Assembly (NCBI GenBank): GCA_004431415.1
Contig: QPMI01000395.1
Span: 186,001-250,000, forward strand
Source: Cyanophora paradoxa CCMP329
Taxonomy: Eukaryota; Plantae; Glaucophyta
Length of the DNA stretch: 64,000 bases
Reading direction: 5' to 3'
Part shown: positions 50,586-64,000 of the stretch, one piece after another
Layout of the letters: each line of letters begins with the position of its first letter
Position numbering within the stretch: the stretch's first letter is position 1
Position numbers and translations under genes: made by a program
Notes under the pieces: generated by a model
Databases searched by the model: none
The model's input: the letters and a program-made list of their open reading frames with translations, nothing else
Told to the model about the DNA's origin: nothing

Positions 50586-53500
50586 TCAGGCGGCGGTGAA
50601 GGAGAGCTCGAGGATGTCCTCGCGGAGCCACGCGGGCTGACCCGCGTCCCCCGCCACCTCCGCGCAGTGGCCCGCCAGCGCCCCCGCGTCACCCGCCGCC
50701 CACCTGCCCCAGCGAAGTGAGCGGCGGGGTGGGATGGGAGGGGGAGGAGGATAGGGGGGGTACAGGGCGACGGCGACGCCGTAGAGGGCGCGGGCCCTGA
50801 GGTCGGGGGGTAGGGGGCCCTCCAGGAGGCGGCGGAGCCCCGCCTCCGCTCCGGAGGGGTCCGCTCCCGCGCTGCGCCGCCCCCTTGAGAACGGGAAGCG
50901 GCGGGGGGTACGGCTCAAGCTAAGGCTTGCCGACCTTTGTGTGAGGCGTTCGATCTGGCCGGCGAGCGTGTTCGCGCCTTCTTGGGCCGAGGCCGGGGCC
51001 GAGGCCGGGGCCGGGGGGGAAAGCTCCAGAGAGCGAAGGGAGACGGCGAGGGCTGCGGCGACGTCGCCGACGTCGCCTTGCAGCGCGGGGAACTGGGGCA
51101 GCACGAAGCGGTGGAAGGGGGCGCCAGGGAGGTCGGCGGCGCAGGGGCAGCCGCAGGGCGGGGCGGCGGCGGGCTCGAGGCGGCGGGCGCGGGGCCACCA
51201 GAGGGGGTGCCGGGAGGGGTCGGCGTCGAGGGCGAGGGCTCCCAGGAGGGCGGCGAAGACCTCCGAGGGCTCCTGGGAGCCGGGGCCGGGGCCGGGGAGG
51301 CCCGGGGCGAGGCGGGCGAGGGCGCGGGCCTGGGCGGCCTTCGAGGCGAGCACGCGCCGGACCGCGTCGTGGAGCTGCCCGACCTGAAGGAAAGCTTAAG
51401 TGAGGAAGCAAGGAAGGAAGGCGACCTAAGGAAAGTTTAGGTACGGAAGTTATGTGGAGCTGCCCGATCTAAGGAAAGTTTAGGTACGGAAGTTAGGAAG
51501 GAAAGTCTAAGGAAAGGTAGTAAGGAAAGTCTAAGGAAGGAAGGAAGGAAGTAAGGCAGCAAGAGAGCGAGGAAAAGAGCGAGGGGGCGGACGGAGGCGG
51601 CGGGGAGGGCGGCAAAGGCGTGGAGGGCGGCGGCGGCGGCGAGGGCCGCCTCCCCGAGCCACGCGAGGCGCAGGCCCGCCGCCGAGCCGCTCCCAAAGAG
51701 CGCCTGCGGGGGGCGGGTGAGCCGTCCGCGGCGCCGGCCTCGCTGGATCTAGAGCTCTAATTCAAGGCTTTCTGAAGCCTTTTACGGCTTCTTGAAACTT
51801 TCTGCGTGGATGGCGCACGGTGGCGAGGAGGCGCTCGTCCGAGAAGGCGTAGCCGAGGGCGCCCTGCACCTCCGACAGCAGCCGCCGCGCCTGCGACGGG
51901 GCGACCCGCGGCGGCGAGGCCGGCACGACTGCGAAGCTCGTCAGGGCCGAAAGGAGTCGTCGGGGCGGGGCGGGGCGCACCGCTGGAGATGACGGAGCGG
52001 GTGAGGTCCTCCCCCGCGAAGACGTGCCGCGCGACGAAGGCGCGCAGCGCCCCAGGCCCGTACTCCAGCGCCACCGCCGCTGCGGAGGCGAGGCTAGGCT
52101 CGGCCGGGGCCGCACGAAAGGGGGGGGTACGCGCGCGGACCGAGGAGGGCCTCGACGGCGTCCGAGACGAGGTTGGGGGCCTGCCCGGGCTGCAGGTGGT
52201 CCTGCGCCGGTCCGCCGTCAGATGATAACTCTAGAAGCGTCTAGATCCGAAGGAAGAGCATGACATGTTTAGAAGAAGATGAAGGCATTAAGGCATCAGA
52301 AGAAGCTTAAGACAATATATTAAGAAGATGCATTAAGGCATCAGAAGAAGCTTAAGACAATATATTAAGAAGATCTAGAAGATGAAGGCGTTCGGGTCTG
52401 GGTCGAGGGCGCACGTTGCGGAGGACGGCGTGGGCGACGGGGAGCGGGGCGGCGCCCGGGGCCGGCGGGGCCGGGGCCTGCGCGCCCCCGACCGCCTGCA
52501 GGTACTCGTTCGACGTCAGGTCCCCGAACCTGACCATAATCAGATCAGACCAGGTCAGATCAGATCGGATCATATCGATCTGATCTGGCTCACTTCTGCT
52601 GGAGGTCGCGGGGGAGGGCCGCCTTGTTGGCGTCGAGGAGGGCCCAGCGGACGCAGAGGGCGAGCAGAGCGTCTCCCACCTGCGAGAGGGAGCCCGAGGC
52701 GGCTCAGGCGTGGCGGGGAGATATATACGGCCTAGGGCGGCTAGGGCTAGAGAGAGTCATCTATCTGTCTCTCTGTCTCCGACCTGCTCGAGCCGCTCGT
52801 TGCTGCCGGCCTCGCCGCCCGTCGCCGACGAGTGCGTGAGCGCCTCCGCCACGAGCGCCGGCGGGCGCGCGGGGTCCAGCTCCGCCCCCAGGTCCTCCGC
52901 GAGGCGGGCAAGGAGCGCCCCGCGCGCCACGGCGCGCCGCAGGTCCCCGAAGGCGCGGAAGGCAGTCGCCAGCGCGTCCCGCATGCGGCCTGGAGGATTG
53001 TAAGAAGGAGCAGGAGCTGAGGAGGAGGAGAACGCGCGCCCGTGACGCCCGTCTCGGCGGCGCAGTGCTCCGGGGCCAGCAGCGCCCCGCCCTCCGTGAC
53101 CAGCAGCGGCTGCCGGCGGGCGAGGAGCCGGGGCATGCCGCCGCCCTCCGCCTCGTACTTCTCCGCCAGCGCCACGAAGCGGCTGGGGTGGCACGGCTGG
53201 AAGAAGGGCACGGCGTCCTCCGTCGTCTTCTGCGAGACCTCCACCACCTGCCGAGGAATGAAATTACAAGGTATCGGCAGTGCAGGATTGCAAGTAGAGA
53301 AAGTACGCTGTAGTAGAAGCGGGCGCGGCCGGCGCCGTGGAGCCCGGCCTCGTCGGCCCGCGGGCGCCGCACGACGGCGTCCGTCAGGAGCGCCTCCACC
53401 TCGCGCCGCTCGCCCCCCGAGAGCTTCGCCTTAGGAGAGGGAGGCTTAGAAAGAGGAGAAAGAAGGGCTTAAGCTTAGCGTAAGCGTTAAGCTTAAGCTT

Positions 53501-54300
53501 AAGCTTAAGCTTAGCTTAAGCGTTAAGCTTAAGCTTAAGCTTAAGCTTAAGAAGCTTAAGAAGGGCGGGGCCGTGCGAACGAAGACGAGGCGAGAGGCGA
53601 GGAGGCCCTCCGGGGCGCGGGGCGCCAGCAGCCGGCGGGAGAGGTCCTCCGAGAGGTCCAGGGCGGCCGCGGAGCCGTCCGCCAGGCGGCACTCGCACGC
53701 CGGCGGCTCCCCGGCGCCGGCGCCCTCGCCCGCCTCGTCCATGACGAAGCCGGGGTAGAAGAGGAGGGGGCCCTCGGCGGCCATGTACGCGGGGGGCGCG
53801 GGGAGGGGCCCGTCCGCGCCGCAGAGGCCGTTGAATCGCTGGAGCCGCTCGCGCTGCGCCGCGCTGAGCGCCTGCGGTCGCGATCGCGATCGATCGCGAG
53901 AGATTCAACCCGACGAATCCGAAAGAGGGAGGGGGCGAGGGGGGGCGCACCAGCACGCCGCACTCGACGGCCGCGAGCGAGGAGAAGCGGCGGTAGGCGG
54001 AGGCGGCGGCGGCCGGGCGCGGGGCCAGCGGGCTGGGCTTGAAGGCCTCGACGTGGGCGTCGCGCAGGGGCAGGGCGAGGCGCCCGCCCGGCGGCAGCAG
54101 CGGCGTCCTCGAGGCGACGTAGAGCCCGGCGAAGCGGCGGGGGCCCAGGTGCGCCGGGTGCGGGGCCTGCCCGGGCCGGGGCGTCAGAAGGCGTGGCGCG
54201 GCGTCGACAAGGGCGACTCGCTCGCCTGCGGCAGGTCGGAGGAGAAGTGGAGGAATGTCAGAAAGAACTGCTGCGGGGGGTCCTCGGTCCTCAGCAGGGC
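50586..54300 (-). other. Dicer-like module: platform, PAZ, connector, RNase IIIa (intact), RNase IIIb (degenerate)
   Basis: IIIa: EALTHSS..SNERLEQ|VGDALL and SDAVEALLG. IIIb: LGYAFSDERLL, LRLAWLGEAAL and SEVFAALLGAL. PAZ-like LTDAVVRRP..FYY..QPLL..LAPEHC. Platform-like LSAAQRERLQRFNGLC. Confidence 0.82.
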
Positions 54301-57300
54301 CGCCAGGCTGCGCGCGGGACTGCTCGGCGGGCGCGAAAGGGTGCGAATCGAAGGGGGGGGGGGGGGGGGGGGGGGGCGCACAGCTCCGGCTCGTCGTCGT
54401 CTTCGACGTCCTCGATCTCCTCGAGGCGCGCCGGCTCGACCTCGCGGCTGCGCCCGGCCCCCGGCACCCGCTGCCCGCGCGGCGTCAGCCGCGTCTCGCT
54501 GGCGCGCGGGGGTGGGCGCACGATGGTGTGGGAGGCGCGTCCCAGGCCCGACCGGTTGCCCGCCGTCTGCGCCCCTCGCACCGCCGCCTCGAAGACCGCC
54601 GGCGCCGAGCCGCCGCCGCCGGCGCCCCGGCCGGCGGCCGCGGCCGCCGGTGGCGGGGCTCCTCGGTAGAGCATGGCGGAGAGGCGGCCGCCGGGCCCGT
54701 AGTCGACGCCGGCTGGCGGCGCCGGGCCCAGCGGCGCGCGCAGGGCCGCGCCGCCCCATCCCGCCGACGCGTTCTCGCGGGGGCCGGCGGCCTGCGGCGA
54801 TTGCTGCGGCGCCGGCGCCGAAGGAGGGCCCGTGCGGGCGCGGCCGGCGTGCATCTCGCGCGTGAAGGGAGTCTCAGCGACCACGAAATTCGAGGGCGCT
54901 GCGGTGCGAGGCGCTGCGGCGCAGGATGCGTGAGCGGCGCGGGCCCGGGCGCGTGGTTGTGCGGTAAAAGAAGGGCACCGGCCGATTCAGATGCAGGCTC
55001 GGGAAACGCGGCTGCTGGCTGCGCGGGCGCTGCGCAAGAGTCGGACGATGCACGGTGAGCCCCTTTCCCAGATCACGGCGCTCACCAGGCGGCAACTCCG
55101 GCGTCGGCGCAGCGGGCGAAGCGGGAGGGGGCAGCGCGGGCCGCGGCCTCGCGCCTCGCTGCGGCTGCGATGGCGCCGTCTCCTGGATCACCAGCAGCCT
55201 GGCCGGAAGTAAACACTCGAACTCAAAGGAAGTGTAGCAGAGTAGGACTCACGACCTGGCGTGCGCGTCTTCAAGACCGGCGACTTCGACGGGCGGCGCG
55301 TACGCCGCGGGCTGAGGCTGCTGCGCGTGTCCAGGCCTGCGCGGACGGGGAATCGACGGGAATCGAGGGGCAGGGACCTCCGAGAGCTCGAGCAAGGCGC
55401 ACCAGGGCAGCGGCTGGTGCTGAGGGTGCCACTGGGGCGGGGGCGGGGCGTGGTAGTGTTGCGGCTGGACTGGAGGGCCCTGCGGGTACTGCAGGCCTGC
55501 GCAAGAGCCTGAGAAGCGTTCTGGGCGAGGCGGGAGCGCGTTCGAACCCGGGAACATCGGCGGGGCGGGCGGCGCGCGGTCCACCTCTGCGATGAAGCCG
55601 CAGCCGCTCTGCCGGTCGTACTGGACGAGGCGCGTCCCCCCGCCGCCGGCCGTCGGGCCCCACGCCAGCACGCGGTCGGCCGGAAGGAAGCCGGCGGCCG
55701 TCGGGACCAGCGGCACCTGGACGGGGGCGGCGCCGCCGGCGGGGACGTGGGGCCAGGGTACGCCGGCGGGCAGGGTGGCCGCCGCGGTCGCGCCATGGAA
55801 GAGAGGGGCGGGAAGCGGCAGCGGCTGGGCGAGCGGTGCGGGCGGGGCTGGAGCCGGCGGGGCCGGCGCGGGCGCCGGGGGCCGCGAGGCAGTCATCGGG
55901 GGCCTGTAGGGCGGCGGGACCCTAACGGGCTGGGGTACCGCGCGAGCCGGGGCTGCGGAGGCGGGATCCGGGGCGGAAGCGGGCGGGGGGTACGCGTTTG
56001 CCGGCGGAGCGGGGGGTAGTGGCGGGTTAGGGGAGGGCGCGGGAGGGGGAGGAGCCGGGGCCGGGGCGTAGGGCGCGTGGAGCGCGGGAGGCGGATTGAA
56101 TGGTGCATGGCCATGGGGGGCCGGCGGGGCAGGGACCGCCTGGTCCAGGAGGAGGGAAGGGGGCTGCAGGTGCAGGAGCTGCGAGGGGGGCGGCCCGTAG
56201 GGGCTCCATGAAGACGGAAGCGGAGCCGGCGCGGCGGAGGGCGGGGCCGCGGCAAGCGGCCGCGGGGCCGGGGGAGGGGGCGGCGGAGCGGGGGGGTACG
56301 AGCCCTCGAAGAGGCGGGCGACGGAGGGCGCCAAGGGCTCGGGCGGTCGCTGTGGCTGTAGCTGTACCCCCGGCGCGAGCTCGCCCTCGTGCTGCTGTAC
56401 CCCCGGGGCGGGCTCCCCCTCGCTGCTGCTGTCCTCGGGCCCCGCCTCGCCGGCCTGCGGCGGCTGCGGCTGCTGGGCCTGCTGCGGCCGCCCAGCGACC
56501 CTCCGGTGCGGCCGCTGAGGCGCCTCCGCCTCCTCGCGCCACTGGTTTGGCTGCCCGCCGAACGGGTGCGGCAGCGGCTCGAGCAGCGCCTCCTCCACCG
56601 GCGCGAAGTCCGCCAGCCTCGGGTCCTGCCCTCGCCCTCAGCTAAGCTCTCCAATGCCTCTTTAGAAGGCGGCGCCGCCGCACCTTGGCGAGGGCCGCGT
56701 CGACGAGGTCGCGGGCGGGGCCCTCGTGGAGGACCCAGAAGTCGCGGGGCGCGAGGACCGCGAAGCGTGGGGCCGCCCGCAGCGGGCGCTGCTTCCCCAG
56801 CACGTCGTCCACGTCCCCCGCCGCCTTCTCCGTCTGCATACGCTTCGAAGTCAACGTCTTTCTAATCAGGATAGACGAGGGAGCGAGGCGCGCGCACCTG
56901 GCCCCACCACGCGACCCCGACCTGCACGTCCCTGCGCCGCGCGGCCATCAGCGGATCGGAGACGGGGCGGGCGGAGACGACAAGGCCGCGCGCCCCAAGG
57001 AGCCCAGGATGTGGAAGGTCTTGAGGGCGCGCTCGGCCACGTCGCTGTTGGAGACGGCGCCGGCGTCGGGGCAGTAGATCACCTGCGCGGGCCGACTTGA
57101 GCGCTTTCATGAGAGATCGAGTTCGCGCGGGGCGCGCCAGCCTCGTCCCGAGGCGCTGGATGCAGTCGCGGAGCAGCAGCTCCGAGCTCGCGAAGTCGCC
57201 CCCCGAGCCGCTGCCGGGAGGGGGAAAGGAATGAGACGAGGCTTGATCTAGAAAGACGAAGATCTAGGTCTTGAGCGCACATCCCCGCGCCGATGACGGC

Positions 57301-59331
57301 GAGCCCCGTGTTCGCGCAGACGACCAGAGGCTGCGATGCGCGGTTGGGCGATGCGAATGTAGGACGGGAGGGCTCCTAGCGACCTTCAGGCCGCCCTCGG
57401 TGAGGAGGAGGGCGTGGCGCGTCGTTCGCGCCGGGTCCTTCGGGCGCCACACGAATAGCGGGATCTGCCCGCTCCGCAGCTGCGCGCGCCCCGGTCGCGT
57501 TTATCTTTCCCGGGAAAGTGGGGCGGGGCGCGGGCTTCGGACCTGGTGGAAGGGCGTGCGGCGGGTGCTCCCGGGGGTCCAGTACCGGCAGATGCCGAAG
57601 CCCGGACGGGTCTTGACGATCGCTGGCGCAGAGGGACTCAGCCAGAGGGGAGGAAAGAGCTCGAGCTCAGCTCGGGCCGAGCAGGCGCGCGCGCGCGTAC
57701 CCATGGTGATGCGCTCGTCGATGTCGACGGCGGGCACGAAGAGGCCCGGCGGCCCCGCCAGCAGCGACTCCGGCACGTGGTTCTCGACGCTGGGGTCGCA
57801 CTCGCGGACCAGGAGCTCGTTCCCGGCGGCGTCCGCCGGCTTGACGCCGGGGAGGCGGACGTCCGGCGGCGTCTCCCGGAACTTGTCCTTCTTGAACTGG
57901 CCGCAAGCGGGCTTAGTCGCGCGGCGGAGAAGGTCGAGCGCGAACGGACGCGGCCGCTGCGCGCACGCGGTAGGGGTCCCAGGTGCAGACGTACTCGCCG
58001 CCGACGATGCGCTCCAGGAGCCGCCTGCAGACGCCGCGCGCCTTGAGCTCGTTGCGCTCGTCGATCTGGAGCCTCCCGGACATCGCCAGCGTCGGCAGGA
58101 TGCGGTGGACGTACTGCCGGGGTGAAGGCGGAGGTCAGGCCGGGCGGGCTGGCCGGCCGGCGCGCGGCGCTTAGAGGCTGCCGGGACCCACCTGGTGGTG
58201 CCGGGTGTCCTCGTCTAGCATATCTTCGGGGTTCGGGCTGGAGATGAGCTGGAAGTGCAGCTCGCCTGCGGGAAAGGAACCTCAGCGGCTCCGAGGCGCG
58301 CGCCGAGGAGCGCTGCGCGGGGCCGGCGCGCGCACCGTGGACGTTTCTGGAGAAGACGGGCACGGCGCCCGCCCGCCCCTCGAGCGCGGCCAGGTCCGGC
58401 ACGTCGCCCCAGCGCCGCCAGAGGTCCCGCATATCGCTCCGGCAGACCTCCGAGAGCTGCGGCGTCACTGGCGGGCCCGTCGGCCGCGCCGCAGCGGTCA
58501 GCGAGCACCGGCGCGGACTGCAGAGGTAGGGCGGCGGCGCACGAGAGGTCGAGAGGCTGCGGCAATCGCGGTCGCGGCAGGTTAGGATGGCGCGTGGGCT
58601 GTCTCCGAGACAGACGATGACGCGATACTCCAGCGTCTGCGCGCCGGCGTATACGTACGCGTCGTACGTCGCGCCGCATGAAAGCGATGTCGGGGCGCCG
58701 CGTTCTAGATCTCGGACCTTGTGCTCGCGCCCCCTCAGGAAGCATCGCGCGTGCGGCAGAGGGTAGAAGTTGATGAAGAACTGTCGCAGTGTCAGCGCAA
58801 GCGCATGCGTCGCGCCCAGATCTAGAGGTGCATTGCACGCGCACCTTCTTCTCCTTGAAGACGGCGCTGCAGCTGCGGAACTGCACGTTGTCGCGCTCGT
58901 TGTGGGCGTCCAAGGCCAGCCCGTCCAGCTGCCGGATCGCCGCGATGGCGTCCGCCGCGTTGTTCGCCAGATTCCACTGCGGGCGATGCGATGTGAGAAA
59001 TAAGCATACAGGGCCGCGTGCGATTGCGTGCGATTGCGTGCGCGAGGCACAGAACTCTAGATCTCCGGTCATCCATGGTCCGCACCAGGTTGCGAATGAA
59101 CCACTCGGGCAGCGTAGACGAGAGGCATATGCGTGGCTCGCTGATCTCGCTGGACTCTTCCTCCGCCGCGGCGGGCGCGGCTGCGGCCGGTTGCGGCTCG
59201 AAGAACGAGCTGTAATCGACCGGCGGCGGCGGCGGCGGCGGCGCATACGCGACATCGAGCAGCTCCGCTCTGACGTATTCGACGACATCCTCGACGCGGC
59301 GCCGAGGCTCCCGCCGACGCGGCTGCGGCAT
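50586..59331 (-). CDS. Predicted TOPRIM(primase-like)-Dicer fusion protein (multi-exon); alternatively two adjacent genes split near 54854..55250
   Basis: TOPRIM exons at 56684..57482, Pro-rich ORF at 55249..56598 and Dicer region at 50586..54884. In-frame GT-AG introns 55199..55252, 55030..55085 and 54914..54978 connect them, and there is no intergenic-like gap. Confidence 0.6.
53467..53560. repeat. Intronic (AAGCTT/GCTTA) tandem repeat within the Dicer-like region
   Basis: Tandem GCTTAA units visible in the sequence. Confidence 0.8.
56684..57900 (-). other. TOPRIM primase-like domain resembling cyanobacterial plasmid/primase proteins (DUF3854/CyRepA1-like N-terminus)
   Basis: VRLPGV, GLFVPAVDIDERITMG, LRSGQIPLFVWRP, LLLTEGGLK|P, VIGAG, VIYCPDAGAVSNSDV and VAWWGQ|TEKAAGDVDD, in the order expected for this family (family recognised from recall). 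Confidence 0.68.
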
Positions 59332-59386
59332 CTTTGGGGGTACAGTCAACTCAAACTTCAGTCCAAACTTCGGTCGAGTGGGAATC
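59332..59386. promoter_or_regulatory. Putative bidirectional promoter between the TOPRIM-Dicer and PIWI genes
   Basis: Only 55 bp separate the divergent predicted ATGs at 59331 (-) and 59387 (+). It contains a duplicated CAAACTTC. Confidence 0.45.
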
Positions 59387-62300
59387 ATGACAGGAGCGGG
59401 CAAGCGCCCGTCCGGGAAGTCGGCAATGCGTGCGCGACCGCCATCCGCGCCGTCGCAACCCCCGGCGGACGGGAGCTCAGCGGACGGGACGGCTTTCGTG
59501 TCCACTTTCCAGTTTGTCGACGTCCAGCAGCCGAGCGCCGATCCGCCCTCCCGGACGATCGCACAGTACGACATCGAGTTTTACGATTCAGACCGGGTGC
59601 GCTCGCGCGATGTGCGAGCGCGCGATGCGCGATATCGATGCCCATCGCATGCATGCGCATGGACGGATGCGCAGGAGCCGATCCTGAGCAGGAGAGTCTG
59701 CCGTGAACTTTTCAACAGCCTGCGGCAAGAAGGAAAGCTGCCCGGTGAGCTCGAACCGCTCTCCTTTCCGGAATAGCTAAGCATCGATATCGGACGCCGG
59801 GCTCGAACGCCTAGCTATGGCTATAGGCGCCTGGCCTGCTTGCCTATGGTCATGAGCTCTGTCCCGCCTGGCGGCTGCGCGTGCGCTGACCTCCTTGCTG
59901 CCGCTTGCAGAGGCCTCTGGTTTCGATGGCGGCAGCATCGTCTTCGTCAAGGGCGGCATTCCGAACGTGGAGGGCGATCCGACGCTGATTCGATTCAAAG
60001 CGGCCGTGCGGATCGGCGGCAGGCTCAGCGAGGGCGTCGTCGCGCTGACGCCGACCGCCGTTTTCGAATTCGATCCCAAAGATGAGCGCGCGAGGGCCGC
60101 ATGGGTCATCGTCCTGCGGGAGGTCAGTTTCTTTCTCGGCCGTTGAGCGCTAGCCAGCTAGGCTGCCGCTGCAGCTGGCTCAAGCTCGATGCGGCTCTCA
60201 GATGCAGCGAGCTGGCGGGCTGCACCCGCGGGGCAGGAGTGGCGTGTTCCCTGACACGGTCTCTGGCAACCAGAAGATCACGTTCAAAGACGCCTCCGGC
60301 CGGGACCGAGAAGCAGTGCGCCCCGGGCCCTTCACATTCTCGTTCCGCCGCCCTCGGCTCACGTGTACGGCATCTGCAGATCGTGATAACGGGCATCAAC
60401 ACGGTCCCGGGCCTGGTCTGCACGGCGGACGGTGGCGTGACGACGGGCTACGCGGCGGACATCGTGAGCCAGGTCGTGCGCGTGGAGACGATCCTGGACA
60501 CGCTGCTGGAGCTGCTCGAGGAGCACAGGGCGCGGAGGAGCGAGCGGCTAGTGGAGGCGTACGCTCGCCCCGAGTTCCAGAAGGTCGTGAGGCGAGAGCT
60601 GGAGGGCAAGACCTTCCTCACAGAGTGCGCGGGCGCCGTCGATCCCGCCCCCGCTCGCTCCGAGCTCGAGCTCGAGGGGCAGGCACGAGCGGGGCGGGGA
60701 CAAGCGGCGCACGATCGCGCGCATCGACTTCGCGCGGCGCCTTCGCGACACGTTCGACGAGGACCTGCCCGGCGGGGGCACGCGGGCCGTCAGCCACGAA
60801 GAGTACTTCCGCCGGGTCCGCGCCCGCCGCGGCTTCCCTGTTTCTAGATCTGTTTCTTTGTTTTTGAAGTGGTGCCGCTGATCTCTCGCGATCGCGAGCA
60901 GAAGCACCCCGACCTGGAGCTCGAGGGAGAGGACGACTCGCCCATCCTCGTCTACGAGCTTCCCCCTCGGTCCGCGCTGATCGATCGCTTGGCGCGGCTG
61001 CGCCGTGCTGATGCGCGCGCAGGACGCCAGGCGAGCGGCCGCGGGAGTGCTTCCTCCCGCCGAGCCTGGCCCGCGTGACGGGCATGTGCGCGCCGCCCCG
61101 ATTCGCTCGCCCCCCACGATCGCCGTCTGAACTGGCTTTCCAGCTACGACGGCGAGACGGAGCTGCGGCAGAAGGTCGTCGCGCTCTCCAAGGTCCGACC
61201 CGCCGAGCTGCTTCAGCTGCTGCTGCTGCTGCGGCTCGCGATCGCCGCCTCTTCTCCGAACGTTCTCACCGCGCCCCTCCCGCAGATGAAGCCGGAGGAG
61301 CGGGCGGTCAAGTGCGTCGAGTTCAGCAACAGGATCGCCGACGGCGGCGAGCGGCCCCTGGCCCCCGACTCGGCCGTCCGCAGGGCGGTCCGCCCTCGCC
61401 CTCGCCCCGCCCCGCCCCGCCCCGCCCCGCCCCGCCCAACGCCGCCTGATGGCGAGGGTGTCGGCAGCCGGCGGAGGCGTGGGGCCTGCGGCCCGTGCGG
61501 TCGCTCATGCAGGCGCAGCACGACGTGCTCCAGGTCGGCCCGGGCGTCTGCCCCGCGCGCCCCCGCTCGATTCGAACCGGATCCGCGCGCGCTCGCGCAG
61601 CCGCCGCGCATCCTCTCGGGCGGCAACACGAGCAACGACGTCGATCCCAAGACCGGTGCTCTTCCCTCCGCTCTGCTTTTCTGCCATCGCTTCGTCAGAT
61701 CAAAGCTGACTCTGCCCCAGGCTACTTCTCCTCGGCGGCGAAGAACCCGGTCTACGACCCCGTACCCCTGCTCGACTGGCTCATCGTGCACCCGCCCCCG
61801 GCGCCGGCGGACCCCCGGCGGCCCTCCTCCTCCCGTGGCCATGGCCACGGCTCCGAGGGGCCCGAGCTGGCCGACCGCCTCGCCACCCAGCTGAAGAAGG
61901 CGGCGCGGGCGGCCGGCGTCGACCTCTCCGAGCCGCGCGTCGCGCCGGCGAATCAACCCTCGCTCGCTGCGCTGCAGCGCTCCGGGGCCGTCACGGGCGC
62001 GGCGTACCTCGCTGCCCTCCGCGAGAACCTCCGGCCCTCCACACAGATCGGTGCGGCTTCATTATAACCTGTCCGCCTCTCAGAGTCTTCTTCTCACGCT
62101 TTTCAGTGTTCTTCATCCTGCCGAAGAATGCGAAGGACAGCATGTACGAGGACATCAAGGGCGGGACGATCCCGACCTGCGGGGCCGTCACGCAGTGCGT
62201 CAAGGCGGAGAGCCTGGTGCGGCCCTTCTTGCCTGCCTTCCCTCTTTTCGGTGCCGCCCCTGACGGAGGGCGCAGAGCAACCCCGGGAAGATCCTGCAGG

Positions 62301-63223
62301 TCGTCCAGGGCATCATCCGGCAGGCGCGCCGGCGCCCGGGAGATCGAAGCCGCTCGGGCCGGGCGAGCGGGGGCGGTTGATCGAGATCGGGTCGCCTGCG
62401 CAGGTCGTCTCCAAGTGCGGGGGCGAGGCTTGGCGCGCAGACCCCACGCGCACCATCGCCCCGCGCGGCCTCGGTGCGGCACTTTACTGAGCCTTAAAGC
62501 AGCTTTTAAGCTTTAAAGCGGTTTTAAAATAGCAGTTATTCAAACTTCGACTCGGACTTTACGCAGGGGACCTGTGCGTCGGGCTGGCGACGTGCCGCTC
62601 GACACGGCAGCCGGGGCACATCGTGGTCGCCGCCGTCTGCGTCGACGCCCGCACCTACAAGCAGTGCGCGCCCGCTCGCGCGCGCGCGGCCTCCATCCAG
62701 CCCGCCGCCGACGGCGCGCGCGCGTCGCAGGCTTGCGTCGGACGTGCGGAGCGTGCCGGCGGACGCGGACCGCGATCGGCGGTCGGAGGCGGCGGCGGTG
62801 GGCGAAGTCGTCGCCGCCGTCCTCTCCGACGCGGCGCTCAAGGCCGGCGCCCCGGCCGCCTCCGCCTCCGCCTCGGTGCGGGCCTTTATCTTCCGGCGGG
62901 ACGTGGACCGCCGCCGGCTGCGCGACGTCGAGCTGCCCGCCGTCCGCGCCGCCGTCGGGCGGGAGCTCCCGGGAGCCCTCCTGGGGTACGCCGTCTCCGG
63001 CAAGGCCAAGCAGCGCGCGTACTTCGTGCCGGAGGGCGCCAGCGCCGCCGACCCCCGCAACATCCGGAACCCCCCCGGTGCGGGCCTGCACGAACCCACG
63101 TACCCCCTCCCCTGCGGTCCGAATTCGCGTACCCCCCGCAGCGGGCCTCTGCGTCACGGGGGCGGGGGCCCCCGCCGACCCCGACGCCGCCTCGAGCTTC
63201 CTCGTCACCCACAGGTGGACTGT

Positions 63224-63256
<33 letters not shown>

Positions 63257-63730
63257 CCCTTCGCCGCTCACCCTCCCCAGCTCGCTGCCCGAGTCGAAGG
63301 GAACGCCCATCCTCTCCCAGTACACAGTGCGCGCGCGCGCCCGCGCGCCGCGCCCTCCCCCTTCTCAATCCATCTATCTATCCATCTTTCTCCCGTCGCC
63401 GAGGCCGACCGGACCCACCCGCCCGCCGCAGATCCTGCAGGACGAAACAGGCCTCGAGAAGAAGGCGTGGGCGCAGCTGACCCAGAACCTCTGCTGCTGC
63501 GTGCGCCGCGCCCCGCCACGCCACGCCATGCCGCGCCTCGCGGCTGACCGGCAGCTGTACCCGGGCCGCTCACCCACCGCCCTGCGACGCAGTACCCCAA
63601 CCAGCCGAAGGCAATCAACGAGCCCGGGCCGCTGCGGATGGCGCAGCGGGAGGCCGAGCAGGTCGCCTCCTGCGTCGCCTCGGACGCCCCGCCCCACCCC
63701 AACCTCCTCGAGACCCCCTTTTACCTCTAG
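59387..63730 (+). CDS. PIWI-clade Argonaute protein, predicted slicer-inactive (spliced)
   Basis: N domain (IAQYDIEF, FDGGSI). PAZ (IARIDF...SHEEYFR...PILVY...FLPPSLARVTG). MID pocket (MYEDIK, VTQCVK, VVSKCGG). PIWI (NPPGLCV, SFLVTH, KGT...YTILQD, LTQNLCC, YPNQP.AINEP). Terminal PFYL-stop. Confidence 0.85.
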
Positions 63731-64000
63731 TCCGCCCTCGTTCCCGCGGTCCCGAACCCCTTCTCCCCCTACGGCCCTTTCCCGCTGCCCTCTTTCCTGC
63801 TTAGGCCCTTTAATTTCTTCAGCCCGGCCCTCTTTCGTCCCGTCTCAAGCCGCACACGGTCTTTTGAGTTTTTTCCTGTCCTGCTCTCTTAGCCTCCGGT
63901 TTTTTTTTTTGAAAATCAGTCAGATTACGTTCAGTCAATGAATCAATTGCAATACGTTTCTGAAGTCCTCTGAAGTCCGTTCCCCCTCACTTGGCCCCTC

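Follow-up and report, generated by a model that had tools for sequence, protein, structure and literature searches.

A DnaG-type primase-like domain joined to a Dicer-like module in a predicted gene of the glaucophyte Cyanophora paradoxa

Dicers are known with an N-terminal helicase, of the DExD/H type in most, or with none, as in the Giardia type. A locus of the glaucophyte Cyanophora paradoxa CCMP329 raises the question of whether a domain of another kind can occupy that place, and what it might do there. The locus lies in a window of 64,000 nucleotides (assembly GCA_004431415.1, contig QPMI01000395.1, positions 186,001 to 250,000 of the forward strand); all coordinates below are positions in this window, and the gene in question is on its minus strand. 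A first-pass annotation, made from the sequence alone, had proposed that an in-frame splice path fuses a TOPRIM domain to a Dicer module in place of the usual helicase, an architecture not known to it. On balance, it seems rather probable that the locus holds one nuclear gene, with the origin and mechanism proposed below, whose protein of about 2000 residues consists of four parts: an N-terminal region of about 260 residues with a possible zinc finger, a primase-like core, a linker and a Dicer-like module.

A continuous reading frame across the locus

The coding region of the fusion gene (50586..59331) comprises 38 exons and 37 introns, and encodes 1999 codons followed by a TGA at 50586-50588. 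This layout was obtained by threading a public EukProt protein, tig00020510_g9828.t1 (EP00741_Cyanophora_paradoxa_P010153, 1999 residues), which fits 59331-50589 at 100% identity with 37 introns. When a single exon was used as query against 1.84 billion protein representatives, only this protein was returned, at 99% identity. Since an exact public model exists, the fusion is a prediction already deposited. Independent evidence comes from the contigs of four public sequencing runs (X1, X3, X8 and X10) aligned to 52500-58499. The contigs of X1 and X3, which belong to two studies, skip short stretches that read CT..AC on the plus strand and thus GT..AG on the minus strand. X10, a run of 2012, is colinear with the window at the same sites and is therefore a DNA run, whereas X1 and X3 behave as RNA. 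One X1 contig (record 1, 5158 letters) covers the sequence below 56000 in spliced form, passing through the linker and reaching the RNase III exons, and contigs of both studies are spliced over this stretch. When the RNA is used to set the exons between 56854 and 52400, the resulting path comprises 1138 codons and contains no stop. The proposed in-frame path from the TOPRIM domain to RNase III thus exists and both halves of the gene are transcribed; the public model contains the same fusion, and between 56683 and 53248 its introns and the RNA-derived set are identical, every one.

The primase-like domain meets the linker at an intron of 58 nt (56626..56683, GT..AG), which is supported by RNA on its acceptor side and by the public model. 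Across it the protein reads ...DLVDAALAK followed by DPRLADF, as the first-pass annotation had placed the junction; the public model reads DAALAKDPRLADF. In two RNA contigs, X1 record 2 (2020 letters) and X3 record 12, the alignment covers 56292-56624 and breaks off exactly at the acceptor (56624/5), with 1687 and 194 further letters beyond it, respectively. The public exons from the ATG (59331) to 56684 total 1656 nt, so that X1 record 2 would start 31 nt 5′ of that ATG; by this indirect argument, its start is a plausible 5′ end of the transcript.

The linker (54382..56625) is encoded by 633 codons in seven exons (56625-55548, 55496-55403, 55336-55253, 55198-55086, 55029-54979, 54913-54522 and 54470-54382), drawn from the public model and the RNA. 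Joints in the RNA contigs mark the introns 55337..55402 (66 nt) and 54471..54521 (51 nt), each in X1, X3 and X8, and exact joints in X1 and X3 mark 55030..55085 (56 nt) and 54914..54978 (65 nt), neither of which is skipped in the DNA run. The intron 55497..55547 (51 nt) follows from letter arithmetic on the RNA contigs, the ends of the aligned pieces and the public model. Another intron, 55199..55252 (54 nt), is absent from the 15 joints listed; however, X1 record 1 has 341 letters between 55546 and 54979, which is 568 minus 51, 66, 54 and 56. This count fits only if all four introns are removed, and the intron at 55199-55252, also used in the public model, is thus required. Downstream of the linker lies an intron of 74 nt (54308..54381, GTGCGC..CAG) that holds a 28-nt poly-C run. 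The stretch 54342-54415 was masked as a repeat in the RNA alignment and the joint was dropped, but the intron could be recovered by letter counts: near the poly-C run, 74 letters are missing from each of the three RNA data sets, the sole canonical solution is 54381-54308, and the public model agrees. The text across this junction reads ...DDDEPEL followed by LAALLRTEDPPQQFFLTF. Once the intron is removed, reading continues in a different frame, in which the TGA at 54291-54293 is not encountered. The next intron (54167..54225, 59 nt, GC..AG) is seen as a joint in both X1 and X3. Of the nine introns from 56683 to 54167, five have lengths not divisible by three, and the open frame therefore depends on the observed splicing.

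The first-pass annotation had predicted three of these introns, 55199-55252, 55030-55085 and 54914-54978, and all three are borne out. Its two flanking open reading frames (ORFs) are each interrupted and had been taken as continuous. The ORF 55249..56598 contains the introns 55497-55547 and 55337-55402, which had been missed and are both multiples of three in length, and the ORF 54291..54884 contains 54471-54521 and 54308-54381, the second of which bypasses the TGA at 54291.

The linker is 25% Pro and 19% Ala, matches no Pfam domain and, at about 630 residues, is probably disordered. Its 1899 nt hold no in-frame stop, and the two alternative frames hold two and five; sequences simulated with the dinucleotide composition of the linker had 5.5 stops on average, and the probability of none was 0.005. 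G+C content is about 70-80% in the gene's part of the window, where spliceosomal introns are short, and G+C at third codon positions is 0.85-0.98 in every part of the fusion coding sequence.

The primase-like domain and its relatives

What had been noted as a TOPRIM domain is predicted to be a primase core of DnaG type that includes a TOPRIM subdomain (56707..58071, residues about 262-545, 9 short exons). In sequence it is related only to the primase-like domains that cyanobacterial plasmid replication proteins carry. In BLASTP, residues 342-539 match positions 170-370 of a 1333-residue CyRepA1-family protein of Crinalium (E 3e-22, 34% identity). A tblastn search of plasmids with residues 385-555 gave 79 records, nearly all cyanobacterial (best E 2e-15), many of them annotated as "plasmid replication protein, CyRepA1 family", and a pattern scan of one GTDB genome per prokaryotic species gave 74 loci, almost all in cyanobacteria. 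The same cyanobacterial domain is carried by L047, in a metagenome-assembled genome labelled Rhizobium sp. Q54, and by L075, in one labelled Actinomycetales. Within the tree, L047 and a Pseudanabaena sequence hardly differ (branch lengths 0.08 and 0.12), and binning contamination or the recent movement of a plasmid is a likely explanation for the two loci.

An alignment of 38 sequences has 17 invariant columns, all of which are kept in the Cyanophora protein; the invariant motifs include EGxxK, PDAG and AWWxQxxKxxxDxD. The TOPRIM glutamate, Glu416 at 57398, is encoded by an exon (57384..57479) reading LLLTEGGLK, in which Glu and Lys are invariant in the 38 aligned sequences; it aligns with ITEGAKK of Slr7037, a bona fide CyRepA1 protein of the plasmid pSYSA. 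The exon at 56994..57082 contains VIYCPDAGAVSN, and here the second TOPRIM motif, DxD, is lacking: its position reads D-A-G (Asp467 at 57067; D and G invariant), within a P-D-A-G shared by the Cyanophora protein and all 37 cyanobacterial relatives. This position aligns with FDNDN (D-N-D) in the DUF3854 of Slr7037. The last two TOPRIM exons (56931-56898 and 56833-56684, together 56684..56931) carry AWWGQ..K..DVDD, so that a D-x-D comes after AWWGQ, and end in ...DLVDAALAK.

The predicted structure agrees with these relationships. An AlphaFold2 model built with the 38-sequence alignment has a predicted local distance difference test score (pLDDT) of 75.7 and a predicted template modelling score (pTM) of 0.78; it replaced a model made without the alignment (pLDDT 53), for which the Foldseek rows were meaningless. 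Compared with solved structures by VIA-align, the model has as its top eight rows the primase cores of DnaG, T7, T4 and Twinkle (Z 14.5-10.4 over 181-244 residues). The DnaG cores score Z 14.5-12.6, with Bacillus subtilis DnaG at Z 14.5 over 243 residues (root-mean-square deviation 3.7), and other TOPRIM proteins, namely RNase M5, RecR and topoisomerases, stand lower in the list at Z 5-7. In Foldseek the top 26 rows are all primases or Twinkle-type proteins (E 7.5e-5). As in DnaG, T7 gp4, T4 gp61 and Twinkle, the predicted fold spans both subdomains of the RNA polymerase core and the TOPRIM glutamate is conserved. The Cyanophora domain differs from these primases in its low identity to them (12-16%), in the D-A-G in place of DxD and in having an RNase III partner instead of a replicative helicase.

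A more specific assignment is suggested by comparison with DUF3854. No score on the domain was obtained with Pfam or NCBIfam, the Pfam DUF3854 and Toprim models included; DUF3854 has no match at E <= 1 in the Cyanophora protein or in five cyanobacterial relatives, and matches Slr7037 at E 3.4e-50. BLASTP to Slr7037 is likewise not significant, and Slr7037 is thus no more than a distant relative of this subfamily. The link to DUF3854 is drawn only from an hhalign E of 0.0056 with the motifs in register, from language-model features (DUF3854, 0.96, with Toprim_2 also indicated) and from the fold, for which the best cluster among the ESM Atlas models is 92% DUF3854 (template modelling score 0.65). 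Taken with the relatives and the model, these matches place the domain in the DUF3854/CyRepA lineage, as a primase core of DnaG type from a subfamily with D-A-G for DxD. Other routes returned little: a PDB sequence search with the N-terminal 560 residues gave chance rows only, as did tblastn against phages; ESM Atlas gave no usable match with one exon; and Pfam on raw ORFs and single exons gave only a weak RNase III start, the TOPRIM region staying blank because its exons are too short.

CyRepA1 proteins combine DUF3854, which is Toprim-related, with a DEXDc helicase (PMC10079941; PMC9978351), and Pfam finds DUF3854 and helicase families in Slr7037. The Cyanophora domain shares with CyRepA1 and CyRepA2 its 34% identity, the three invariant motifs and the match to DUF3854 clusters. 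In contrast, the DEXDc/superfamily helicase (SF1/SF2), present in the Crinalium and Synechocystis proteins, is absent from the Cyanophora protein, as are the zinc ribbon and the CyRepA C-terminal part, and the gene is nuclear, with 37 spliceosomal introns and host G+C content. Since the helicase is absent, the protein is not a CyRepA protein and has one domain in common with that family. No CHC2 zinc ribbon was found in it, and some cyanobacterial relatives have one. Upstream of the DnaG-type core, in the position usual for a CHC2 ribbon, there is a Cys-x6-His-x20-Cys-x4-Cys pattern (58546..58753, residues 136-178), for which Pfam Herpes_UL52 scores E 0.12 and 12.7 bits, below threshold. Its spacing is presumably like that of the UL52/PrimPol zinc finger, and the pattern may weakly point to a finger of this kind.

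The Dicer-like module

The C-terminal part, where the first-pass annotation had placed RNase III, carries two such domains in tandem, as recognised by Pfam. RNase IIIa (52020..52858, residues 1539-1684) aligns to bacterial RNase III and scores E 6.9e-12 with Pfam Ribonucleas_3_3 (46 bits against a cut-off of 35) and E 1e-9 with Ribonuclease_3; it reads NERLEQVGD and SDAVEALL, and thus has the full ERLExxGD and DxxEA. RNase IIIb (51227..51670, residues about 1745-1828) is degenerate, with LRLAWLGEAAL and SEVFAALLGA. Taken alone it scores E 0.014 with Pfam Ribonuclease_3, below the cut-off, and it appears as a second stretch in the match of the whole protein. As read from the sequence, four of its five acidic positions are changed, unlike those of the intact IIIa.

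Ahead of RNase IIIa lie about 350 codons (52989..54307, residues 1186-1538) whose introns are all supported by RNA. In size and place this region would suit the platform, PAZ and connector of Dicers, and no domain was detected in it: residues 1180-1540 have no match in Pfam, NCBIfam or PDB sequence searches, and a divergent PAZ is often missed by searches of this kind. The term Dicer-like is accordingly meant here for the tandem RNase III domains and does not extend to the platform/PAZ part. Pfam searches of the whole protein and its parts found no helicase, PAZ, DUF283 or dsRBD, and the same search does find the helicase in CyRepA1 proteins. The claim that the usual helicase is missing therefore holds at the level of Pfam detection anywhere in the protein; that it was "replaced" is an evolutionary reading. 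The protein resembles Dicers in its two C-terminal RNase III domains and in having before them about 350 residues, the stretch in which platform, PAZ and connector would sit, and departs from them in the lack of a DExD/H helicase and of the other Pfam domains just named, in the loss of acidic residues from IIIb and in an N-terminus made up of a bacterial DnaG-type primase core and a Pro/Ala linker.

Several details of the gene model are less settled. An exon model made by dynamic programming outside the RNA-covered stretch disagrees with the public model in six places and was set aside; the public model is preferred because it keeps the AWWGQ family motif. The intron at 52990-53039 is 50 nt long (GC..AG) in the RNA contigs of two studies; in the public model it is 44 nt long (52990-53033, GT..AG), and the protein gains the two residues Ala-Arg. 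Either the model contains a small error at this site or two splice forms coexist. GC..AG introns seem common in the fusion gene, being supported by RNA at 54167-54225 and 52990-53039 and present in the public model at 57083-57137 and 56932-56993. At the 5′ end, the open frame extends 81 codons beyond the public ATG (59332-59574), back to an ATG at 59574, and codon usage is coding-like from about 59430. The start codon is uncertain, and the RNA letter count favours a 5′ end near 59362. At the other end, X1 record 1 has about 1400-1500 letters more than the coding exons downstream of 52782 need, and may cross the 3′ untranslated region into a neighbouring transcript around 47.8-50 kb. Outside the gene, a plus-strand frame at about 62800-63100 contains ...VRAFIFRRDVDRRRLRDVELPAVRAAV...YAVSGKAKQRAYFVPEG and by eye resembles PIWI; no match was obtained when the long plus-strand ORFs in 60101-63938 were searched with Pfam and against the PDB, and a PIWI gene is neither confirmed nor rejected.

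Origin, alternatives and meaning

The primase-like domain most likely came from a cyanobacterial gene of plasmid type, by endosymbiotic or horizontal transfer. The captured gene would have lost its zinc ribbon and helicase, and the domain would now occupy the place that the DExD/H helicase has in most Dicers. It appears to have been resident long enough to acquire host G+C content and the 14 introns of the N-terminal region (residues 1-552). As for mechanism, the tethered module may bind a single-stranded template, might lay down short complementary RNA and would thereby bring or create a duplex substrate for the RNase III module. In other Dicers the supply of duplex is the role of helicase domains or of partner RNA-dependent RNA polymerases (RdRPs), and the N-terminal end of Dicer shapes substrate choice and movement along the substrate. 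Dicer is coupled to an RdRP in Tetrahymena (Dcr2-Rdr1) and in fission yeast (Dcr1 with RDRC). What such systems would share with the Cyanophora protein is the physical joining of a polymerase that copies a template to a nuclease that dices, with synthesis and cleavage of the duplex at a single site. They consist, however, of separate polypeptides with a double-psi beta-barrel RdRP, whereas the Cyanophora protein has a DnaG-type fold, of putative activity, in the same chain. In its most specific form, a primase-coupled Dicer would copy single-stranded DNA or RNA from invaders or mobile elements into short RNAs and cut the resulting duplex or hybrid to small RNAs, which at present is an improbable, speculative extension.

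Several observations weigh against a single gene with this origin and mechanism. With D-A-G at the DxD position and an RNase IIIb without its acidic residues, the catalytic activity of either part may have changed or disappeared. In a tree, the branch of the Cyanophora domain is so long (3.5 changes per site) that it cannot be placed, and no donor lineage is therefore named. Two very large protein searches returned no orthologue of this architecture, so that conservation cannot serve as support. Homology searches with separate parts, the meaning of which is limited by a length window and a word filter, found no protein with the linker ORF, nothing with the TOPRIM part and only tig00020510_g9828.t1 itself with the Dicer part. 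On the RNA side, the displayed alignment pieces include neither the donor of the 56626-56683 splice nor the TOPRIM exons of X1 record 2. No RNA contig among those listed bridges 56001-56291, where a small X8 contig covers 56092-56246, and a contig across two genes is not proof of a single transcript. In the literature, nothing relevant was found on a Toprim and Dicer fusion and no paper describing this gene was found, which is in keeping with the first-pass annotation, to which no such architecture was known. The sole paper on C. paradoxa small RNAs, from 2013, reports only a BLAST match of Arabidopsis DCL1 to a gene model (PMC3700990), which may or may not correspond to the fusion gene.

The main rival accepts the fusion and takes the primase-like domain to be catalytically dead, serving for binding, localisation or dimerisation in an otherwise ordinary RNase III enzyme, possibly one that nicks single strands or acts as a dimer. 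The D-A-G, the lack of a CHC2 ribbon present in some cyanobacterial relatives, the long branch and the silence of the Pfam DUF3854 and Toprim models would all fit such decay. The D-A-G, however, is invariant in all 37 cyanobacterial relatives and is thus a trait of the family rather than decay of the Cyanophora gene. All 17 family-invariant residues are also kept, including the TOPRIM glutamate and the D-x-D of AWWGQ..K..DxD, and the whole two-subdomain DnaG core is predicted rather than a mere remnant. A dead domain is thus possible but somewhat doubtful.

It is unlikely that the locus instead holds two adjacent genes, one for a TOPRIM protein whose tail is Pro-rich and one that is Dicer-like and has an extended leader, joined in gene prediction and contig assembly and made to look like one mRNA by read-through or overlapping transcripts. 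The RNA contigs are indeed interrupted between 56000 and 56292, GC-rich DNA readily yields long open frames and the linker has no detectable domain. Assemblies, on the other hand, tend to break in Pro-rich sequence, and the gap sits within a single Pro-rich exon of 1078 nt with no stop and no change of frame. The 633 linker codons are open (P about 0.005) and depend on the five spliced introns that are not multiples of three. In addition, the Dicer-side contig begins 537 codons upstream of the first residue of the Dicer region, in the TOPRIM frame, and a TOPRIM-only transcript ending in 56001-56291 would carry no stop codon. Finally, a TOPRIM module acting as a nuclease like those of the OLD family or RNase M5 could add a second cutting activity and compensate for an RNase IIIb that is dead by sequence, and RNase M5, RecR and topoisomerase TOPRIMs do appear in the fold list at Z 5-7, but this is very unlikely given that the best fold matches by a wide margin are complete DnaG, T7, T4 and Twinkle cores with both subdomains (Z 10.4-14.5, 181-244 residues) and that the sequence relatives are replication proteins.

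The preferred reading, a single gene with a captured primase-like domain at the head of a Dicer-like protein, would bear on both the capture of bacterial domains by nuclear genes and RNA silencing. If it is correct, the locus offers a clean case of a cyanobacterial plasmid-replication domain that entered the nuclear gene of a eukaryote, came to be split by many spliceosomal introns and was joined to a eukaryotic module, and a bacterial primase core on a Dicer-like enzyme would be a new way to feed an RNase III nuclease. Should the primase-coupled form of this mechanism also hold, silencing triggers could be produced with no RNA-dependent RNA polymerase, by a domain captured from a cyanobacterial plasmid. 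The host is a glaucophyte, a deep branch of plastid-bearing eukaryotes in which RNA silencing has barely been studied, and the architecture provides a concrete protein with which to ask whether single strands are bound or primed, and whether one strand is cut or two.

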